From positions 372,001 through 436,000 of the forward strand of contig JAIVFI010000037.1 in the NCBI GenBank assembly GCA_025558095.1: 64,000 nucleotides of DNA, given 5' to 3'. A program made the translations under genes and the position numbers. This DNA comes from Hyaloraphidium curvatum SAG 235-1 (lineage: Eukaryota; Fungi; Monoblepharomycota). Each line of letters opens with the position of its first letter. Positions within the stretch are counted from its first letter, which is position 1. Positions 7,871 through 20,167 of this stretch are shown here, in pieces. The notes beneath the pieces were generated by a model. It did no database searches and was not told the DNA's origin. It worked only from the letters and a program-made list of their open reading frames with translations.

Positions 7871-8164
7871 TCACGGCCTTGAAATCAGGATCAACATCCC
7901 TCCCAAGGCGTCGGCGTCCTCGAGGGCGAGTGCAAGCTCGGGCAAGCCCATGTCGCGCAGGGCTTGCCCAAGGGTTTCCTTGCGGGCCTGGAGGCCGTGG
8001 TGTGCCTCTGGGGAAGCGTTTATTGCGTCCCGGAGGGCGCGGCGGAGGGCTTCGGGGAACTCGCCCAGATGGGCGGTGACGATGGCGTTGGCGCGGTCGG
8101 CAGCGGCGGCGGCCCCTGCCGCGTGCCCGGGCGCGGGGGCCTGGAGTTGATCGTTGTGCGCCAT
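7871..8164 (-). CDS. 97-aa stand-alone copy of an unrecognised helical domain
   Basis: MAHNDQ...DRANAIVTAHLGEFPEALRRALRDAI...ARKETLGQALRDMGLPELALALEDADALGGM aligns with 8497-8787 and with the repeats at 14540-15887. Confidence 0.7.
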   Translation of the reverse strand: MAHNDQLQAPAPGHAAGAAAAADRANAIVTAHLGEFPEALRRALRDAINASPEAHHGLQARKETLGQALRDMGLPELALALEDADALGGMLILISRP

Positions 8165-8496
8165 ATTCTTGGAAAGGATTCGAGGACGGATAGCGCGCGA
8201 ACGAGACGGGAACGCGTGCGACGGGTGACGTGTCGCCTGCTTTCTGATGGGAGCTGCCGAACGTCCCAAAATCTCCCCTAACCACCGGTGGCGGCGCGAT
8301 GGACGTCTCGTGAGGCTCATCTGTACCACGGAACTCTACTTCACTCCATCTACTGTTCGAAATCGTCATGTTTTCCTCACAGCAGTGGTCCCCGGGCGGG
8401 TGCCCTCCTCCCCCGTGCGCACCCGACCGACCGCGTCTTTCCCAGAGGTCAACGACATAGCCGATAAGATCGCCTTTAAAGCCACAGCTCACCACA

Positions 8497-8787
8497 TCAG
8501 TGCGTCTCAACGTAAGCGAGAAGCCCGCCCATAAGCCCGGCGTCCACCAGAGCCTTTGCCATGTCATCCAGCTCCAAGGCGAGCAGAACCCGGCGCAGGG
8601 CCCGCGTGCGGGCGTGGGCGTCGTTGACAGGGATGCCGGCGATGGCGTCGTGGAGGATACGGAGAAGCGTCCCGGGAAACCTGCCACCGAAGAGTGCCGC
8701 GACGATCCCTCCAGCGGCTGCGGCGGCATCCTGCACGGCCCCTGCCCCGTTCCCGGGCACAGCGGCCGGAGTCTGGATGTTGGCCAT
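8497..8787 (-). CDS. 96-aa stand-alone copy of the same domain (tandem paralog)
   Basis: GIVAALFGGRFPGTLLRILHDAIAGIP...ARTRALRRVLLALELDDMAKALVDAGLMGGL; complete ATG-to-stop ORF. Confidence 0.72.
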   Translation of the reverse strand: MANIQTPAAVPGNGAGAVQDAAAAAGGIVAALFGGRFPGTLLRILHDAIAGIPVNDAHARTRALRRVLLALELDDMAKALVDAGLMGGLLAYVETH

Positions 8788-9057
8788 CGTTTCTTCTATC
8801 AGGATTGAGGCGGTGCGGACGCGTTCACGCGTTCGTAGGGATGACGCGTCGGCGGCGTTGTGTGCTCTGGGAGCCGACTAGTATTGACTCAAACGAGCCA
8901 CCACCGGGAGAAACGACCACCTGTGGTTTCTACCCTCAACGTGCGCGCGTTGTTACGTCCCGTGCGACCTGGAGAGCACGCCGTTCCGTTGGGCGCCGTC
9001 CTAGACCTTCGTCCTTGGCGCATACAGTCCCGAGTCTCCCTCCAAACAAAGGACGCC

Positions 9058-9716
9058 ATGGTAAACGCGCAGGATTTAGCCATCGCCATCACTCACCAGT
9101 GTCCGCATCTAAGAGCGGTCAAGGGGGCACGGAAGCCGGGGGCGGACCCATTGCTGGTCCTCAAGGCCACGTGTCGCACGGAGCGGCGCATGCGGACGCT
9201 CCAGGAACACAAGCGGCCCACGGCAACGCCATTGACGCCACCGGCGGTGGGGGTGGAGCCGGACTGGATGGCCAGGCGGGAGTGGAGCCGACTACAGCCG
9301 CGGGAGGAGGAGTGGGAGCGGGGGCGGCGGGCGGGGAACATGTTGCGGACTCGTGAGGCGTTCTTGGCCTGCCATGCTTTCCGAGTCGTGCTGATCCACC
9401 GCTCCGTACGGTGTCGTCTTCAGCCAGGTGAACAGCTACAGGCTCTCGTTCCAGGTGCGTCGACAGCGCTCTCGCTGGGAGGGGCATGATTCTGACGTGT
9501 CTGGGGCTCAAGACCTTTCTCCTGTGGAAGAAGCGGGTGGAAAAGGCCGGCATCGACCTCACGGGCAGGGAGTTTTTCCATCTGTTCGACACTGCGTTCA
9601 ACGCAGGCCGCATCCCTGGCGTGAACGGAGCCCCAGCCGTCTCCGCGCCACTGACCGCCGAGGAGGCGGAATGGATCGAGGAGTGGAAAGAGAAGGTGCG
9701 AGCCCGCGGCGACTAG
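9058..9716 (+). CDS. Hypothetical multi-exon protein
   Basis: ATG at 9058; intron GTGCGT..CTGAC..AG at about 9455-9511; last exon TFLLWKKRVEKAGID...EWIEEWKEKVRARGD*. Confidence 0.4.
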
Positions 9717-10270
9717 GTGGATCGGCGGCGCAGCAGCAGAGAGAGTACCGGTGCGGCACATGTGTTGCTGATGGGGTAGAGACCATTACAAACCAAAGCT
9801 AGGGCGCCCGGCCGCAACACCTGGGGGCCAATCAACGGCCCAGCAAAGGCTTCGACGGCTGCATCTCGCCACCCGCAGCCAAGGCACATCGGTCGTCGAA
9901 GCCACCTCGGTCCTTGTAGCACGCCGGTGACGCCCCTCTGCGACGGTCCGGGCCAGGCCGGGCCTATTTCGGCTCTAGCCGCCGGACGCGCAGTTGCGTG
10001 TCGCTGCCCGCGGTCGCACGCCCTTCGGGTTGATAGGCCTTTGGTTGGGTTAGTTGCCGGGGTTGAATAGACTTAGCTTCGATGCGTTCGCTTCGGGTTG
10101 CGGAAGAATTCTCAGAAGGGGACGCCGGTCACAGAGTCTGGGTTTCCGACGGTTCGCTTTCCGAACGGAACGATGACTTCTATGAACGGTTCGAGCCCAC
10201 AGCGAGCGAACCCCCGCTCGACTACATTTCGCGCTGCTTATATTGGTCCCGGGCCGCGAGGCTGAGCGTC

Positions 10271-10322
10271 TCCGGATCTCCGGATTCTCCGGATATCCAG
10301 CCCATCTCCGGATTCTCCGGAT
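10271..10322. repeat. Cluster of five TCCGGA palindromes
   Basis: TCCGGA starts at 10271, 10279, 10288, 10307 and 10316. Confidence 0.8.
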
Positions 10323-11521
10323 TCGACACAGCTCCGCTCTATCGCCCCTCTATGACATGTCCCCGATAAGAAAATGGAACGTCGGATAGGAAAATGTTAA
10401 CCCAGGCGGCCCGTGCCGCCACACCTCCACCTCGACTTCCATGGTGCGTTCCACGCACCCACAAAGCGGAGATTCAACACGAGGCAGCAGACTGGCGTCG
10501 ACCCGTAAGCCAGAATAGTGGAGCAGGGAAGGATGTGTCTTCGGGGACGTTGAGCGGATGGCGGAGAGACGTGGGCCGTGGGTTGACGCGATCGAAGCGG
10601 CCCTGCCCTTCGCGGCCGTTCACGCCGCCTACACCGAGGCAATCGGATTCCGCGCCATCGGGCGGCCGACCGGGAAAGGCGCTCGGAGATGGCGGCGGCA
10701 CGAAGAGCGGCGCCGCGGGATCAGTGGCTCGGCAGGTCATGTCCGGGGTCGCTCGGCCCGCGTACTCGGCCGCAGACGGATCCAAAGAAAGCGGAAACGC
10801 CGAGTAGGCCGCCGCTGGTCGTCAGGAAAGTCGTTCCCGTCGGTGCCGAAACCACCAACGACGCGGGACACCGCGAGCTCAGCCAACGGACGCGGAGCGT
10901 CCGCGCCGATGCGGCGTCGCCGATCGCCACCTTGCGATGTGTGCGGTTCCGCCCGGTACCGCCGTCCTCTTTTCGAGGCTGAGAGCACGCCGTGGGGCCG
11001 GAAGAGGGACGACAGGGCCGGGTACGACTGCCGCGGGTCGGCTGCTGACCAACCCAGACAAATTCAACCTCACGAGATTGCGGTGCTCGTCACTTGAACA
11101 GGCTGAATTTCCATGATGCGACTTCGAATACCGAATACTTGCCGATTACCTTCCCGCGAATCTCAAATGCCTGATTTCGTGGAGCATCGTGACTTTGGCT
11201 TTTTCGGGACAATCGACGTTGGGTGCTCTCGCGGAGGGGCGTAAGGGATACGTCTCCCCGAGTAGACGACTCGGACGCAATTCCGTCGATGGGATAGCCA
11301 GAAGAGGCCGGAGACCATCCCGATGGTCCGCGATGACGCCGCGGCGATGCGGGATTCGAGGGCAACCAGCGGGCGATGTGATACCCGGCGCCGGGGGAAG
11401 ACGCGGCTCAATCGACGGGTACCGTTCAACTCCAGCGACTGCCAAATTCTGGGATCTTACCGTTGTGATCCGGCGGGTATCGGCGCGATGGTTTGAAATC
11501 GAAGGGGGGGCGTGCAACACC

Positions 11522-12076
11522 GATTTCGAAGGTCCCTACTGAGCCACCCACACCGGGGCGCGTTCTACGCGTACGGAGCCGACCAAGTCGATGTTGGGCC
11601 ATCTTCTGCCGTGGACAAATCGCGATTCACTTGCCATTGCTGGTCATCCGGCCTTTGGCCGCGCTTGTCGTGCTTGATTTGGCCGCGTTTGTCGTGCTTG
11701 ATGGTCGCGATGGTCGCGAGCTACAGGCGCGCCTTCAACAGCAGACGCGTGGAGTCACGCGCAGCTTCCGCAAGCAAGCGCCAGACAAACAACAATATGC
11801 CGAGGTCTGGAATATCCCTGTGGAATGCCGCAGAATTATGCTTACCAATACGCTTTGGGCATCCGCGCGGATGCGGAAGTCGGATTGGTCAGCAAGCGAA
11901 GCGCGGGCGTCGAGGAGGCGTGTAGCAGGAGGATGAGTGGTAGCTAAAAGCCCTCGAGTCATTCGTATTCGTACAATGGGGCGGGCGTGGCGCACTTCGC
12001 CTCGGGACCCCAGGACGCGCCGCGCGGATTTCGAATATGGTCCCTACTGAGCCACACACAGACCGGCGCCTTCTAC
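11522..12076 (+). repeat. Imperfect ~50-bp direct repeat pair enclosing a 24-bp tandem duplication
   Basis: Core GGTCCCTACTGAGCCAC at 11531 and 12039, flanked by GATTTCGAA and TTCTAC; TTTGGCCGCGYTTGTCGTGCTTGA twice at 11654-11701. Confidence 0.8.
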
Positions 12077-13039
12077 CCGATTGCTGGGCAGATTGCCCCG
12101 GCGGCACCGAAACAACCTCCGGGGCCCGACCGCATCTCACCTAGCACTGTCATTCCGTCGCCGACGCCGCTCTCCAGGGATCGTTGTGCCCGACGGTCGC
12201 TGGCCCTGGCCTCGCCCATGAACCTCCCGAACTAGGCCCATCCATGCAAAACCTGGGTAATGTCACAAGAATGGACGCCAGAATCCGATTTCCCGATTCG
12301 ACCCGTGCAGCACTCGCTGCGCAAAAGGAGTCATACGGTTGAAGGGCCGTATGATCCCCGAACCAGCCCGCGCGACCGACTCCCGTTAACCAGGCGATTG
12401 CGAGCTGCAGGTCCGGCAGGACGATGCGCGATAACTAGAAGCCCTCCAGTCCTTCGCCGCTGATGCAATCGGATTGCTAGATGTGAGGACCAGCGAGTGC
12501 GGACTTGGGTCGGATCGGAGACCGCCGACGACGATCTGGACCTGGACCCCAACTCCTGCGCGCCGTTGTTCCTCCTGCGAAACGCCAAGCGTCGTCGTCG
12601 TGGATGGCACCGAATCAATCCGAAGCATGCTGCCGAGCGACAGAGGGTGGCCGGCGGGCGGGCAGCACGTCACGGGGTCCGGCGGCGGCGGCGGCCGTGC
12701 ACCGCCATGCGGCCCGGAGCCGCCGCGGGGAGGGTCTCGATCCTTGCCGTTCTTGTCGGACCGGTGTGCCGCCACGCCCGGGCCGCCCTCCAGCGCGACA
12801 CGGGCCCATAGCCGGCCGGGAGCCTCGTGCGGAGCGGAGCCGCGCCCGCCGGAGATGGCCGCACGAAGCCCAGCGCCGAGCCGGGCGCGGAGCCGGCCTT
12901 TGGAGTTTCGCGCGCGAAGCTTCCCGGCGGGATGCGCGCTGCTCCGGCGTTGTGCGCGTCGGCCAGGGTTAGGGTTGCCTTTATCGGCGCGGCCCGACGC
13001 CTGCCACGAGGCCCGTCTCCCGCCTGCGTGCCCGTCGCC

Positions 13040-15887
13040 ATGTCTGCCTCCGCCTCTGGCTCCGCCCCGCCGCCGCCGCCCGAGGAGCTGCCGCCGCCGC
13101 CGCCGTTCGAGGCCACGGCACCGGGCGGGCCGTGCGCGCCGTGCGTCCGGCGGGCGAGCGGCAAGGGGAAAGGCAAGCCGTGCGACGGCAGCCGCCCCTG
13201 CGGGCAGTGCAAGAACGACGGCACCGACTGCTTCGACATTCTGCCGTCGCCCGACGCCGGCGTCCCCGTGCCGCCCGCGCCGGACGACGAGAGCTCGTGC
13301 ACAACCCACGGGCGCGAACCGCGGGCGCCCCGCGTCGCGTCGGGCCCGCCGCAGGACCGCCCCGAGCCGGCGGTGGAGGGTCTGCCGACGATGGACAGCC
13401 TGAGGGCTACCGTGGGAGACGTGCTCGGCCGCGCGGGCGAGAGCACCGCCCTGCACGCCGGGGGACCCGGACTCGTCCCGCCTGCCCCGGCGCCCCTCAA
13501 CACGGCTCAGGCGGAGGCGGTGCGGCAGCAGATGGACGACATAACCATCACCGCGCGCCAGATCCCCGCCTACGACGGCCCTGGCGCGCTGCCCGCCGTC
13601 GTATTCACGCTGTGCTGGGGGGCCGCGACGTTCGCGGCCGGCGACGACGCCAACGTTCTCGCCCTCCTTCAACTCGGAATGGTCGGCGTTCTGTTCTTCC
13701 TCTCCCATTTCCCCGTCGATCCCAGGCACGTGTGGGGGACGCGGCCGGGGCGGCGGGGATACACGCAGCCAGCACCCCCCCTGGCGTCCTTCGCCCGGGC
13801 AGGATTGCTATGCTATTCCGGCCTCATGGCTGCGCTCCGCATCGCGGCGCAGGGCGGCGCAGAGGGTTCAGTGGGGCCGAACGCGTCGGTCCTTTTCGGG
13901 GATATCTTCCCGATCTTCGCCCCCGCGACCCGCGGAGGCGTGGACCTCGGCAACGCCACCCACATGACGCTTGTGCGCCTCATGATGGAGTTGTACCTGA
14001 TGTTGGGTGGCCGGGTATTCCCCGTTCACTCGGGGTCCGGCTCTCGCGCGGTTCTCACCGTGCTGGTCAGGATGGCGCGGCGCAGCATCCCCCTCGTGTT
14101 CTACGTCCTGGGCCAGCCCGTCACCATCTACCTCCTCCTCGACGTCAGCTTCAGCCCTTCCTTCCCTCGCGCCCCGCTCGTCGTCTTCATCCCGGCGTTC
14201 CACCTGGAACAGACCCGGATGGGCGAGCGGTACGTTCTTCACCTCGTGGCCTCGGACGCCATCGCGTTTGCCGCGGCCGGCATCTTCTTTGGCACCCAGC
14301 ATGCCCTCGCGACTGTGAGGGCGTTCTGGAACAGGCCATTGAGGACGGCCGCGGAAATTGCCGCTGATTTCGTCGAGTTCCTCAAGGGCTGCACGGCGGG
14401 GGAGCGGGACTTTGCCGAGCGCCTTCGGGCGCAAGGCGTGGCCCTGCTGGACGTGATGGACAGGGTGTGGTGTTTCCGCGGCGGTGAGCACCAGCGTCGC
14501 GGCGCAGCTGGCCACCCGCTGATCGTGTCTTCCCACAGGCGTCGTCATTCACCAACTCTGGGACCTCGCGCACCACCTCCTCACCCTTGCCCTCGGCTCC
14601 GTGGAACGTGACGCCCTGCTCAGCTTCCTCACCGAGCGCATCCTGGCCCTCCCCTCCATGGTGCGGTCCGACCCCCGGCGGCGTCGTGCCGAGCTGCTCG
14701 CCGCGTTCCGCGAGCGGGGGCTGGGCTGGTTGGCCGACATGCTCGTCCAAGAAAGGTGCTTCGGCGCCCTGTCGGCGTGGATCGGCTGGGGACAGGGTGG
14801 CCTTGTCACCGCCGCGCTCGTGGACCGTGCCGTCGAGGTTATCACCGCCTTTTTCGGCGGCTCCATCCCTGCCTCTTTCTTCCCCGTTCTGCGCGGCGCC
14901 CTCCTCGACGTGCCCGCCGGCAACCCCGTCGCCCGCCAGAACGCCCTCCGCGCGGCCCTCCTCGAGGGCGACCTCGGCGAGCTGGTTGCGATGCTGGAGG
15001 CCGCCGGGGCCGTGACCGGGCTGTCGGCTCTGCTGGGCAGGATGGCTGCCGCGGAAGCTGGCGCGGGAGCGGCTGGCCTCGCCAGTGCCGCGCTGATGGA
15101 CCGAGCCGTCGACATCATCACCGACTTCTTCGGCGGCTCCATCCCTGCCTCTTTCTTCCCCGTTCTGCGCGGCGCCCTCCTCGACGTGCCCGCCGGCAAC
15201 CCCGTCGCCCGCCAGAACGCCCTCCGCGCGGCCCTCCTCGAGGGCGACCTCGGCGAGCTGGTTGCGATGCTGGAGGCCGCCGGGGCCGTGACCGGGCTGT
15301 CGGCTCTGCTGGGCAGGATGGCTGCCGCGGAAGCTGGCGCGGGAGCGGCTGGCCTCGCCAGTGCCGCGCTGATGGACCGAGCCGTCGACATCATCACCGA
15401 CTTCTTCGGCGGCTCCATTCCCGCCTCCTTCTTCCCCGTTCTGCGCGGCGCCCTCCTGGACGTGCCCGCCGGCGACCCCGTCGCACGCCAGGGCGCGATC
15501 CGCGCGGCCCTCCTCGAGGGCGACCTCGGCGAGCTGGTTGCGATGCTGGAGACCGCCGGGGCCATGAGCGGGCTGTCGGCGTACCTGGGCACGATGGCTG
15601 GTGGCGTTAAACGTGCAGGCGGCAGAGCCAGGGCCACGCTCATCGACCGTGCCGTCGACATCATCACCGCCTTCTTCGGCGACTCCATTCCCGCCTCCTT
15701 CTTCCCCGTTCTGCGCGGCGCCCTTCTGGACGTTCCCCGTGGAGGCGGCCGCGTGCGCCAGGGCGCGATCCGCGCGGCGCTTCTCGAGGGCGACCTCGGC
15801 GAGCTGGTCGGGCTGCTGGAGGACGCCGGGGCGATGGGCGGGCTGTCGGCACACAGGTTGCTATATTCGCGTCGGCGGCTTGGCTAG
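13040..15887 (+). CDS. Zn2Cys6-like protein with five C-terminal copies of an unrecognised helical domain
   Basis: CAPC-x12-CDGSRPCGQC-x6-C cluster; the 55-nt intron 14484-14538 joins ORF 12827-14611 to ORF 14601-15887 in frame. Confidence 0.75.
14820..15860 (+). repeat. Coding tandem repeat, four units with periods of 276, 276 and 270 nt
   Basis: Anchor TTCGGCG(G/A)CTCCAT at 14853, 15129, 15405 and 15675; the first units look essentially identical. Confidence 0.95.
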
Positions 15888-16200
15888 GGCAAAGTGTAAC
15901 AGAGTTTCCTGTTCTCGGACCTGCCGACTCCATCGCCCGGCTCCTCGTCGACCGCGTCCAGCCGCCCTCCGCCGAGCTCGCCGACCTCCGCTCGCAGCTT
16001 CCCGGGGGCGCACGTTCTAGCTGCCAGCTGGCACCAACGACGAGCTTGGCGGGTCGATCGTGACAAGCCGGGAGCGGATCTCATGAACGACAACGCCGCA
16101 GCTCACCGCAACAGGGACTGTAGCCAGCGAAAATCCGGCGCAGCCGGCCGTGCACAGCGTGACAACTGCGAGCGCGGCAGCACGGCGGTGCGACCCCCCT

Positions 16201-16524
16201 TCACCCCCCCGACGGACACGCCGTCCCGACCGTCACGTACACCCCCGCGCCCTTGAGCACGCTCCACAGCCCCACAGCCACCGTGAACGCCGTCAGCAGC
16301 AGCCCCCTCACGGCGCCGGGGCTCACGCGGAACCCGAGGAACCGCGAGCCGCACGCCTCGGCGGAGGACGCCATGGCGCGGAGCAGCCCGGACCCGCAGC
16401 TGCCAGGCTTGCCGCCGGGCTTGGCGCCCTGCTTTCCGCCCGACGCCGTCAGCTTCGCCTCCGCGCGGCTGCGGCGCCACTCGGCGAGCAGCTCCTCGCG
16501 GCTGCGCGACGCGTTCTCGTCCAT
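16201..16524 (-). pseudogene. Chimeric ORF: unrelated N-terminus fused to the C-terminal TM7 region of the GRL/DUF3537-like family
   Basis: GSRFLGFRVSPGAVRGLLLTAFTVAVGLWSVLKGAGVYVTVGTACP matches the ends of the 21238 and 33944 genes; the first ~43 aa (MDENASRSREELLAEWRR) do not. Confidence 0.7.
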
Positions 16525-16556
16525 CGCGGCAATCGGCGACCGACCTGCTGGAGCGG

Positions 16557-17141
16557 ATGGCCCGCACCGAATTCTCGCCCGACGACAGGGCCTTTGTCGA
16601 ATCCGTGCCCATGTTCTTCCTGGCCACCGTGGACTCGCGCGGCATGCCCACAGTCAGCTTCAAGGGCGGCGCCCCCGGCTTCGTCCGCGCCACGGGCAAA
16701 TCCGAGCTGTGCTTCCCGCTCTACGACGGCAACGGGATGCAGCTCACCCTCGGCAACATCGCCGCGACGAAAAAGGTCGGCCTGCTGTTCGTTGACTTCG
16801 AGAAGCCGCGGCGGCTCCGCGCCCAGGGCATCGCCAGGCACTCGCAGGACCCGGCGCTGCTCTCCATGTTCCCGGGCGCGCAGTACGTCTGCGTCGTGGA
16901 GGTCAAGCACCTTTACGTCAACTGCGGGCGGTACATCGCCAAGGGGCATCTGGAGGTGTCGCCGCACGTGCCCAACGCCGAGGGGAAGCAGCCCCTTGCG
17001 GGGTGGAAGCGGCTGGACGTGATCGGGCCCGTGCTCAGCGAGCGGGACAAGAAGAAGGTCGAGCAGGCGGGGGGGTACATCGGGATCGACAAGTACACGG
17101 GGGAGGACGAGCCGGACATGGCGACGCTGGCCGTGCAGTGA
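16557..17141 (+). CDS. Pyridoxamine 5'-phosphate oxidase-like FMN-binding protein, probably 5'-truncated
   Basis: DRAFVESVPMFFLATVD..G.PTVSFKGGAPGFV, YDGNGM..TLGNI, VGLLFVDFE, NCGRYI; homology extends upstream of the ATG (DLLERM) and then breaks at about 16540. Confidence 0.85.
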   Translation: MARTEFSPDDRAFVESVPMFFLATVDSRGMPTVSFKGGAPGFVRATGKSELCFPLYDGNGMQLTLGNIAATKKVGLLFVDFEKPRRLRAQGIARHSQDPALLSMFPGAQYVCVVEVKHLYVNCGRYIAKGHLEVSPHVPNAEGKQPLAGWKRLDVIGPVLSERDKKKVEQAGGYIGIDKYTGEDEPDMATLAVQ

Positions 17142-17712
17142 GGGCGTGACCGGCTTCAACCCGTGTCCGCTGTAAATAAGGCTGAAAAAGAAGATAGAGT
17201 GGATGATGGGGCTGGAATCCATCCAGAGGCGGCCTCGAAGCACCCGAAAGTCGGGCGCCATCGAAGGCCGAGATCACATCGACCAACTTCGAGCTGGACC
17301 TCCGCCCCCTTTTCGAGCTACACATGCCTCCTGAAGCAATAATGCATCGGATTCCAGGGGCAAATGATATGGCTCTTTGTCTTTGGCCAACGCGGACGTG
17401 GTTCGGTGGCGGTGGCAAACGCGGCAGCGTCCCTAGTGCCCTGCTGCCCTCCAAACCCGCGCGCCCTTTTGCGCTCCATGCCGGCGTCCGCCCGGCCATA
17501 TTCGCCGGTTCGCTTCAGAAAGTCGCCGAGTTGAATTTCCGGGTGCGATTCGTCGGCTGCCGCCACCTCCGCCGAGCGACTCCTGACGCATCGCCGCGCG
17601 TGCCTCCAGGCCGTCTGCGGGCGCCCGCCGCCATTCAACGCGTCGGGCGCCACATTCGTTCTTTGAGAGCCTTGCTGCCCCGGAAACGGTTGGGCGGCAG
17701 CACGCGCCAGCG

Positions 17713-19525
17713 ATGGCGGGCTGCTTTGCTCTCCCCGCGGGGCTCCGCGAGACGCTCTGTGCCGCGTTCGCCGCCGCGCTGCCGGGCAACACCGTCTGCT
17801 TCGCGGAACGCGGTGTCCTGGCATCTTTGCTGGCTGGACGCGGAATGCCCGGCGGGGAGGGCGACCCGCGTTGGTCGCAGCTCTACTCCTCTGCGCCGAT
17901 GGCCGCCCTGGCGCTATGGGTCGGCGCGCGGGTGATCGTGGCGACGACGGGCAACGCGGAGCTGGAGCACACGGTGCCGGCGCTCGAGGCGCACTACCTG
18001 TCGGCCGTGCGGACGGAACTCTCGCGCTTCTGGAAGGACGTCGCCTTGCTGGGCGGCAGGCGCCGCACGGGGTCGATGGACCGCGGCCGCAGGGCCCCCG
18101 GCGCAGCCCTCCGCACCCTGCCCAACCTCGCGCTGCTCTATTCCCTCTCCCTGGCGGCCGGCTTCTCGCTCCTGCTCATGGGCAGGCCCGATGCCGCCCG
18201 TGCCATCACGCGCCACTTGGCCGCCGCCCTGGCGCTCACAAGAGTGCCTGGGGAGCTCCCTTCGGAGACGTTTCCGCGCGGAGCGGATGACCTCCTGATT
18301 GATGAGCACTGGCGTGATGTCTTTTGGCTGTGCATGGCCCTGGACGCGCTGCTCGCCTCGTTCGCCGACGACGACATGGCCTTTGATCCTCCTCGATCCT
18401 TCCCGGACGTGCCCCTGCAACCCCACGCCGTCCTCCTGGCCGCCATCCCGCGCCCCGACGCCGGCCCGCCCAACACGGCCGTGCCCGACGCCGTGGCCTT
18501 CTGCGACCGCCCCCGGTGCAGGGACCTCCTCGGCTTCCTGGACCCGCTGCAGGACGGCATGCCGCCTCCGACGGTGCCGCGGGAAGTCACAGTGCGTACA
18601 GCCTACGCGGACTACATGGACGCCGGCCCCCTGGCGCCCTCCACCGGGCCGGCCTACGCGCTGTACCAGGTCTCGCGGTTCTGCCGCTGGTTGCGGGAAG
18701 AAGCTGGCATGTCCATGCTAGGCGTGCTCGCGGCCGAGGAGCTCCTCCGCGATCCAAACACCCCCAGGGCCACCGACGCGCTCTCGGTGATCCTCCGCGA
18801 GACTCTGCTGCGCAACCCGCTGCTCAGGGAAGCGGTGCGCGGGCGGCGGCATCTGCTCGACGCCGTGGGCGCCATGTCCGCCGCCGCGCCCGCCGCGCGC
18901 ACGGCCGCATGGGAAGCCGGGGACTGGGATGCGCTGGATGCGGACCTGGGCAGGCTGCCGGGGGACGCGGGGCAGGTGGTGCTGGGGTCGCTGGCGCTCA
19001 CTCGGCAGGTGAGGATGATGCTGGTGAGCCCCGAGCCGTTCCAGCCGGGGTGGTTGGGGGACGACGAGGCGCTTTCGTCGGCGGGGGCGTCGTCGGGCGA
19101 CCCCCGCGGCGGAGCGTGGTCGGAGGATCTCGCTGGGGAGGACTCGGACGACGCGGTGTCGCAAGCCTCTGATGGATCGGGCCCTTTGGCCGCCGACGAC
19201 GCCTCCTTCCGGCACGAGATTGAAGCCGCCATGCTGCGTATCTGGTCCGGCTCGCCCTCCTTTGCCGAGGCCACCTCCTGCGCTGCGGGGATCGCCGCCG
19301 GCCTGCGCATGCTCTCGGCGCGCATGGCCGCGCAGGACCTCCGCGGCAACTTCTACCTGCTGACCTTCGGCTCCGCCTCGGCCTCCCACGCCGCATGGCT
19401 TGACCTCGTCGTCCTCCGGCACCTCGGCGGCCCCGCCGCCCTGCACTCGGACGCCGCCACCCGGAGCTTCCTCGAGGACTCGGGCCAGCCGCACCACCAC
19501 CGCGCCGGCCTCCTCCTCCGCGGCC
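17713..19525 (+). pseudogene. Fungal-specific transcription factor middle-domain-like protein, 3' end replaced by the Hyi fragment
   Basis: RDVFWLCMALDALLA resembles the Fungal_trans RRxFWxxxxLD motif; long GC3-rich ORF that turns Arg-rich after 19525, where the Hyi frame begins. Confidence 0.55.
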
Positions 19526-20167
19526 TCCGCCGTGCTCCGCTCCGCCGGCCTCGCCGTATCGCTGCTCAACGTCGGAATGGGCGACTTCCTCGCCGGCGGC
19601 CCGGGGCTGTCGGGCGTGCCGGGGAGGGAGCGCGAGTTCCGCGATGCGTTCGCGAAGGCGCTGGAGGACGCAAGGATATTGGGCGCCCGTGCATTGCACC
19701 TCGGGCCGTCGCGGGTTCCCGCCGGGGTGCCCAGGGAAAGGTGCTTGGAGGCGTATGTGGAGAACACCGAGCACGCGCTGGCGCTTTCGGACGTGCCGCT
19801 CCTGGTGGAACCGCTGAACGCGGTGGACAACCCGACGGTGCTCCACTCAGACTTTGACGCCACCGCCGAACTGCTCCGGACCCGCTTCGGGGGCAGGCTG
19901 AAGCTGCAGTTCGACGCGTATCACGCGGCGATGAACGGCCTCGACCCCGCGGCGGCGTTCCGGAAGCACTTGCCGCTGGTGGGCCACGTGCAGTTTGCGG
20001 ACGTGCCGGGGAGGGGCCCGCCGGGGTCCGGGAACGTGGACTTTGGCGCGTTCTTTGCCGCGGTGGACGACAGCGGGTACGGGGGTTACGTGGCGGCCGA
20101 GTACATGCCAAAGGTGCCGACGGCGGAGACGCTGGGGTGGATGGAGGCCCTTGCGGGGCGTCCGTAA
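19520..20167 (+). pseudogene. hyi: Hydroxypyruvate isomerase, C-terminal fragment (~215 aa, no start)
   Basis: LRSAGLAVSLLN, LLVEPLN, LKLQFDAYH, VGHVQFADVPGRG.PG.G.VDF, GY.GYVAAEY are Hyi motifs. Confidence 0.9.

Follow-up and report, generated by a model that had tools for sequence, protein, structure and literature searches.

The window analysed here is a 64,000-nucleotide (nt) stretch of contig 37 (JAIVFI010000037.1, positions 372,001 to 436,000) of Hyaloraphidium curvatum SAG 235-1 (Monoblepharomycota, class Hyaloraphidiomycetes), which has a eukaryotic genome of 31.9 Mb with ~67% GC. Two small genes (mini-gene 1 and mini-gene 2) and one two-exon large gene in this window encode copies of the same domain, singly in the small proteins and as five C-terminal units (R1 to R5) in the large protein. 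These copies belong to a real, expressed domain family that is restricted to H. curvatum as far as current data show. The preferred reading, to which a probability of about 0.4 is assigned, is that the five units form a docking array on a membrane protein and that the stand-alone paralogues take part in the same interaction network.

The first-pass annotation, made from the letters of the window, had proposed that one domain of ~75 amino acids (aa) occurs in both small proteins and five times in the large protein. BLASTP and hhalign show the domain to be real, with a length of ~80 aa, and the proposed consensus pattern is reproduced in MAFFT alignments. The two small proteins match each other (BLASTP E 4e-8) and each matches four units of the array (E 1e-6 to 6e-4 for mini-gene 1 and 2e-10 to 1e-7 for mini-gene 2); profile alignment of the mini-genes with the repeats is also significant. 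Unit R1 is degenerate but real, aligning over 73 columns with a profile built from R2-R5 alone (hhalign E 1.7e-5). Six-frame profile searches of the whole genome, which converged after three rounds, gave a census of 11 copies: the five array units and six stand-alone genes. Three members were picked up by profiles built without them: the second copy on contig 42 (C42b, E 7.9e-15), the copy on contig 12 (C12, E 3.7e-6), and the copy on contig 25 (C25, E 8.4e-6). In none of the 11 copies is the domain fused to another recognisable domain. The stand-alone copies fall apart from the array units in a maximum-likelihood tree, with support of 90/91, which is under the starred level.

The GC content of the copies is 0.74-0.88 at third codon positions (GC3) versus 0.42-0.54 at second positions (GC2), which is the coding signature of this genome, and the ratio of nonsynonymous to synonymous substitution rates (dN/dS) is about 0.46-0.5 for the closest pairs; together these values support the open reading frames (ORFs) as coding. 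For example, mini-gene 1 has a GC3 of 0.80 versus a GC2 of 0.51, and a dN/dS of 0.46 against mini-gene 2. Each mini-gene begins with an ATG that has A at -3 and G at +4, and in an ATG pattern scan that of mini-gene 2 is the first minus-strand ATG below 8862. Purifying selection on the family appears moderate on these ratios. The invariant or near-invariant alignment columns are Ala, Gly, and Leu only, which leaves no residue as a candidate for catalysis or metal binding.

Within the large gene, Tandem Repeats Finder reports a 276-nt period with 3.8 copies and 90% matches at 14811-15850. Synonymous divergence (dS) is 0.079 between R2 and R3, 0.19 between R3 and R4, 0.29 between R2 and R4, and 0.33 between R4 and R5, and about 0.65-0.9 between R1 and the other units. 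The middle units are the youngest, and the age gradient is consistent with a recent change in copy number. The end of exon 1 (residues about 420-481) was considered as a sixth, partial unit and was rejected (hhalign E 0.54).

RNA contigs show that two of the three genes are transcribed, namely mini-gene 2 and the large gene. The RNA source is one run of Logan contigs labelled 'RNA?', and such contigs give neither strand nor expression level; the run is identified as RNA by its contigs, which skip four GT..AG introns and agree with the window at every position. The contigs were placed on a 6000-letter stretch, with mini-gene 1 lying outside it. A 2107-nt contig covers 12721-14482 of the large gene, skips exactly the 55-nt GT..AG intron, and enters exon 2. 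This contig, whose start is at 12721 or earlier, carries ATGs ahead of 13040 at 12855 (out of frame) and 12932 (in frame), and the N-terminus of the large protein may be 36 residues longer if the latter is used. Mini-gene 2 is represented by a 480-nt unspliced contig (8601-8862) that runs ~218 nt past the left end of the stretch, and therefore spans the whole ORF.

Two further transcripts lie beside these. A four-exon spliced gene (8888-9744, plus strand, coding sequence about 9058-9716) is divergent from mini-gene 2, with the ends of the two RNA contigs ~25 bp apart (8888 versus 8862). It has an intron immediately after the start codon (ATG|GTAAAC), which the ATG pattern scan confirmed to be the first ATG, and a 31-nt micro-exon at 9424-9454; the first half of its product is Gly/Ala-rich and is followed by a small C-terminal domain, and the gene has neither a Pfam match nor a paralogue in the genome. 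Between the mini-genes and the large gene, 10394-12676 is covered by one 2306-nt unspliced RNA contig of lower GC (0.59-0.64), which stops 45 nt before the start of the large-gene contig. The two largest ORFs of this region have no Pfam match, and the transcript may represent an independent non-coding RNA, or else an extended leader.

The same annotation had called the domain unrecognised, and it remains so after searches of sequences and folds: no Pfam, PDB-sequence, or fold match was obtained, nor any homologue outside this genome. Exons and units entered the searches and the folding separately, and the two exons were never joined. Pfam returned nothing for any copy at E ≤ 10 except two isolated chance-level rows, and at that level no copy matched HeLo, HELL, Goodbye, or SesA, domains associated with fungal NLR proteins. 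A profile of 8 copies searched against 1.84 billion protein representatives had as its sole match the contig-42 paralogue from the same species, a profile of 11 copies searched against a 5.8-billion-cluster collection had no match, and the best row of a PDB sequence-profile search had an E of 1.1. The whole-family alignment is too divergent to seed patterns for metagenome contigs; patterns seeded from the R2-R5 alignment gave 600 matches, of which 0 were confirmed. Within its class, these searches returned proteins from H. curvatum alone. Of three members looked up in the public protein collection, the exact mini-gene 1 and mini-gene 2 sequences are absent and the first contig-42 protein (P0001) is present as KAI9002528.1, a hypothetical protein of H. 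curvatum. The mini-genes and the large gene appear to be unannotated. Since such genes are missing from protein databases, absence from a database is weak evidence of absence from other under-annotated fungi, and since two of the three are supported by RNA, a protein-only survey would miss the family.

These results bear on whether the family has any specific function. It could be a fast-evolving orphan family with little or no specific function and incidental expression, in which the array grew by replication slippage or unequal crossing-over and the small genes are dispersed duplicates. The absence of homologues in the profile and metagenome searches agrees with this, as do the near-identity of R2 and R3, which points to recent copy-number change, a dN/dS of 0.46-0.5 or higher, which does not indicate strong constraint, and the fact that the public protein collection has neither the mini-genes nor the large gene. 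Isolated lineages often have orphan families, so orphan status is not surprising by itself. However, all 11 copies have retained an open frame and a common hydrophobic core although dS between old copies is saturated (about 0.65-1.6), and stand-alone members keep a common N-terminal start. The RNA contigs also have high word depths (324 and 686), although depth in contigs reflects expression poorly. On this evidence, a family of little or no function is distinctly unlikely.

The fold was modelled with AlphaFold2 for mini-gene 2 from an 8-row family alignment, giving a compact five-helix bundle with a predicted local distance difference test score (pLDDT) of 79.7 and a predicted template modelling score (pTM) of 0.60. 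Compared with the PDB in Foldseek, this model has no row below E 2.6. The VIA exhaustive fold search has a top Z of 5.4 and 1467 chains with Z of at least 2, while helical noise in this tool reaches Z ~13, and the highest template modelling score (TM-score, normalised by query) in an ESM Atlas fold search is 0.52.

A resemblance to death-fold domains had been suggested in the first-pass annotation and is not borne out. If correct, the domain would be a death-fold-like (DD, CARD, DED, or PYD) homotypic assembly domain and the genes a signalosome module in an early-diverging fungus, which the similar size, the all-helical structure, the occurrence both alone and in a multi-domain protein, and the presence of ASC and FADD-DED chains in the VIA list would favour. 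However, the ASC (Z 3.8) and FADD-DED (Z 3.8 and 3.7) rows stand behind about 35 unrelated rows and within the helical noise, the model has five helices rather than six, Foldseek offers nothing below the E given above, and none of 10 copies scanned has a Pfam death-fold match at E ≤ 10. A death fold here is scarcely credible.

A second structural alternative takes the 92-aa unit as two armadillo (ARM)/HEAT-like repeats that have diverged strongly. The five units would then form one continuous alpha-solenoid with some other ligand, for instance extended peptides, and the small proteins, as short pieces of solenoid, would bind ligands of that kind and not the array. A language-model feature search returned mostly ARM-clan clusters at 0.90-0.93 (those listed are TRIP12 TPR, KAP, UNC45, ARMC6, Arm, ELMO_ARM, ARMC9, and LRRK2 ARM), the end of the unit, E-A-G-A-x-x-G-L, resembles the ARM H1-H2 turn, and the helix lengths on passing from one unit to the next (9, 10, and 19) are like those of ARM H1-H2-H3. 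Like proteins with Armadillo/HEAT repeats (PF00514 and its clan), the large protein would thus have all-helical tandem units with a characteristic turn. In that search, however, recognition was 1875, below the level of 2300, and shared features numbered 107-134, where true family hits typically have 170. A six-frame genome scan with Pfam Arm found importin-alpha-type repeats and nothing in the array, no unit matched it at E ≤ 10, and hhalign comparison of the family with ARM repeats of the same genome aligned only the 11-column E-A-G-A..L turn (P 0.25). No ARM protein is among the Foldseek or VIA rows, and the Atlas scores are no higher than the value above. The period is 92 aa, whereas that of ARM repeats is about 42, and the single unit is a compact bundle in the model and occurs as a stand-alone protein. 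The armadillo likeness is therefore weak, a lead only, and a solenoid is unlikely.

The large protein had been called a Zn-cluster, DNA-binding protein; the six-cysteine motif was confirmed, but neither the PF00172 threshold nor the family spacing was reached, and the protein also has five or six hydrophobic segments. The cysteines at residues 32, 35, 48, 54, 57, and 64 form C-X2-C-X12-C-X5-C-X2-C-X6-C. The spacing rule for Zn(2)-Cys(6) clusters is C-X2-C-X6-C-X5-12-C-X2-C-X6-8-C, from which this motif departs only in the C2-C3 loop, with 12 residues instead of 6; the most fitting label is Zn2Cys6-like, with the C2-C3 loop doubled. The large protein shares with Gal4-type Zn(II)2Cys6 factors a set of six cysteines close to the N-terminus, in which the second half (C-X5-C-X2-C-X6-C) follows the canonical pattern and has basic residues ahead of it. 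It differs from those factors in that the C2-C3 loop is lengthened, the Pfam score is sub-threshold, and there is no fungal-specific transcription factor middle domain. A Pfam scan of the whole ORF gave no Zn_clus (PF00172) match at E ≤ 1.

Downstream of this motif, Kyte-Doolittle values in a 19-residue window peak at 1.42-2.06 at residues 183-201, 206-224, 248-266, 349-367, and 399-417, and a sixth segment at 311-329 is weak (1.26). Alternate loops are K/R-rich, with four K/R each, and one other loop (267-309) has two NxS/T sequons. Under the positive-inside rule, the segments and loop charges fit a six-pass arrangement with both ends in the cytosol or nucleoplasm, and the large protein is probably a 5-6-pass integral membrane protein. 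The predicted membrane segments mean that "DNA-binding protein" describes the large protein incompletely; should the head bind DNA at all, the protein would be a membrane-tethered factor. Known membrane-tethered transcription factors include SREBP/Sre1 and Spt23/Mga2, which have bHLH or IPT heads and 1-2 transmembrane segments. A membrane-anchored protein whose head binds DNA would act in the same manner here, although the head is Zn2Cys6-like and 5-6 transmembrane segments are predicted. Exon 1 had no match, not even itself, when compared with the proteins of 265-1040 aa in the 5.8 billion clusters, and no usable match in the Atlas feature search. A genome search found no paralogue of exon 1, so the trio of genes does not co-occur elsewhere; this genome has no second set.

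The six stand-alone proteins are about 74-202 aa in length (ORFs of 74-127 aa and one 202-aa gene model). The longest is P0001, the first member of the contig-42 pair; the second, C42b, is a 95-aa ORF with an acidic exon upstream. Strongly acidic, Asp/Glu-rich N-terminal tails are present in P0001, C42b, and C25, and the other three have short Pro/Ala/Gly N-termini. The start M-(P/A)-x-H...P is common to the proteins of mini-gene 1, mini-gene 2, C12, and C25. No common or informative Pfam domains were found in the neighbourhoods of the contig-42 and contig-12 copies.

The arrangement of one small domain in isolation and in a larger carrier is familiar from microProteins, which the literature defines as small proteins with a single domain that has a relative in a larger protein (PMC9638782, PMC7534434). 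The 96-97 aa mini-proteins agree with microProteins (such as Id proteins, LITTLE ZIPPER, and miP1a/b) in being small (under about 20 kDa), essentially one domain, and paralogous to the domain of a larger protein. They differ in that the domain is a new family and the presumed target has five copies rather than one; in addition, three members add an acidic tail, suggesting roles as adaptors rather than purely inhibitory ones. CARD-only and Pyrin-only proteins are decoys in a similar sense.

In the preferred reading of a docking array with stand-alone paralogues in its network, the domain would serve for structure or binding and not for catalysis. The large protein would cross the membrane five or six times, leaving the degenerate Zn2Cys6-like N-terminus and the C-terminal array on the side of the cytosol or nucleoplasm, and the array would be a multivalent docking platform. 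Stand-alone paralogues would bind units of the array or compete for a common partner, in the manner of microProteins or of CARD-only and Pyrin-only decoys, and the acidic-tailed members may deliver an acidic effector tail as possible adaptors. By analogy, then, a microProtein-like decoy or adaptor role is inferred, with binding as the presumed mode of action. Homotypic binding, with free copies as adaptors, inhibitors, or antidotes, had been put forward in the first-pass annotation and would be a candidate role of the same kind.

Several points count against this reading or limit it. The N-terminal motif scores 16.7 bits against Pfam Zn_clus, where the cut-off is 21 (E 0.0079), over profile positions 13-31 of 39 only, an alignment that covers only the second half of the cysteine motif. 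The transmembrane segments were called only by a crude hydropathy scan. Of the six stand-alone genes, four show no linkage to the large gene, and a dN/dS near 0.5 also fits weak constraint. An AlphaFold2 model of units R3-R5 from a 3-row alignment, made to distinguish stacking into a solenoid from independent beads, had a pLDDT of 48, was unusable, and was discarded before the fold search. Complex prediction for unit R4 with the mini-gene 2 protein gave no verdict, neither for nor against binding.

A more ambitious version is that the domain is a new homotypic assembly module, with the array on a membrane-tethered, Zn2Cys6-derived regulator being opened or closed by six free paralogues, some with acidic, activation-type tails, as a lineage-specific switch invented in Monoblepharomycota. 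This version is improbable; if it is true, the genes would encode a self-contained switch that is functionally parallel to death-fold decoys and microProteins and built from an unrelated fold. If the finding holds, it adds a new domain family for which searches of billions of proteins gave no relative in sequence or fold, and it would be a rare fungal example of the microProtein architecture, in which free single-domain paralogues occur beside a multi-copy carrier, in a group, Monoblepharomycota, whose biology is almost unknown. The coordinates of the genes, units, and other copies are listed in Table 1.

Table 1. Positions of the domain copies and of the parts of the large gene. Positions refer to the window unless another contig is named.
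Feature	Position	Strand	Basis or remark
Mini-gene 1	7871..8164	-	97-aa stand-alone domain copy, coding sequence with stop; ORF
Mini-gene 2	8497..8787	-	96-aa stand-alone domain copy, coding sequence with stop; ORF
Large gene, exon 1	13040..14483	+	ORF; 481 codons plus 1 base
Cys-rich Zn2Cys6-like motif, residues 32-64	13133..13231	+	Cys positions, Pfam Zn_clus
Hydrophobic region, 5-6 predicted transmembrane segments, residues about 183-417	13586..14290	+	Kyte-Doolittle
Intron, 55 nt	14484..14538	+	GTGAGC ... CTGAT ... CAG, restores frame; sequence and RNA contig
Large gene, exon 2 (five-unit array and stop codon)	14539..15887	+	ORF, Tandem Repeats Finder, genome profile hits
Unit R1 (degenerate)	14541..14795	+	hhalign against R2-R5 profile
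Unit R2	14796..15071	+	BLASTP, MAFFT
Unit R3	15072..15347	+	BLASTP, MAFFT
Unit R4	15348..15617	+	BLASTP, MAFFT
Unit R5, then short basic C-terminal tail	15618..15884	+	BLASTP, MAFFT
Contig-42 pair (L005, L016)	contig 42:180214-181679		same orientation, tandem, like the window pair
Contig-12 copy (L017)	contig 12:56191-56445		107-aa ORF
Contig-25 copy (L043)	contig 25:603827-604078		127-aa ORF

The three genes had been placed inside an island that splits a hydroxypyruvate-isomerase-like gene (hyi), and all three do lie between its two pieces. The statement that all copies lie inside the island applies to mini-gene 1, mini-gene 2, and the large gene and does not extend to the family, which has four copies on other contigs. 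The right hyi-like piece (within 19400-20164) matches a xylose-isomerase-like TIM barrel only from profile position 23. An ORF starting at 2695 reads by eye like the missing N-terminus of the hyi-like gene and has no Pfam match.

The genome has just one copy of the mini-gene and large-gene DNA, and the only parts that recur elsewhere are the island edges and two short elements; the whole island as one repeated mobile element was therefore rejected. One short dispersed element (9938-10136) has about five matching places in the genome at 74-88% identity, and the other (16194-16364) has more than 20 on many contigs at 71-88% identity. The 3-kb right end of the island (16540-19528) recurs at 94% identity in the same contig, at a distance of ~170 kb (C37:198487-201472). 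Within it, a 194-aa ORF (16557-17138, plus strand) contains a pyridoxamine 5'-phosphate oxidase N-terminal domain (PF01243, E 1.7e-11) and is one of the small bacterial-type enzymes that had been pointed out at first reading.

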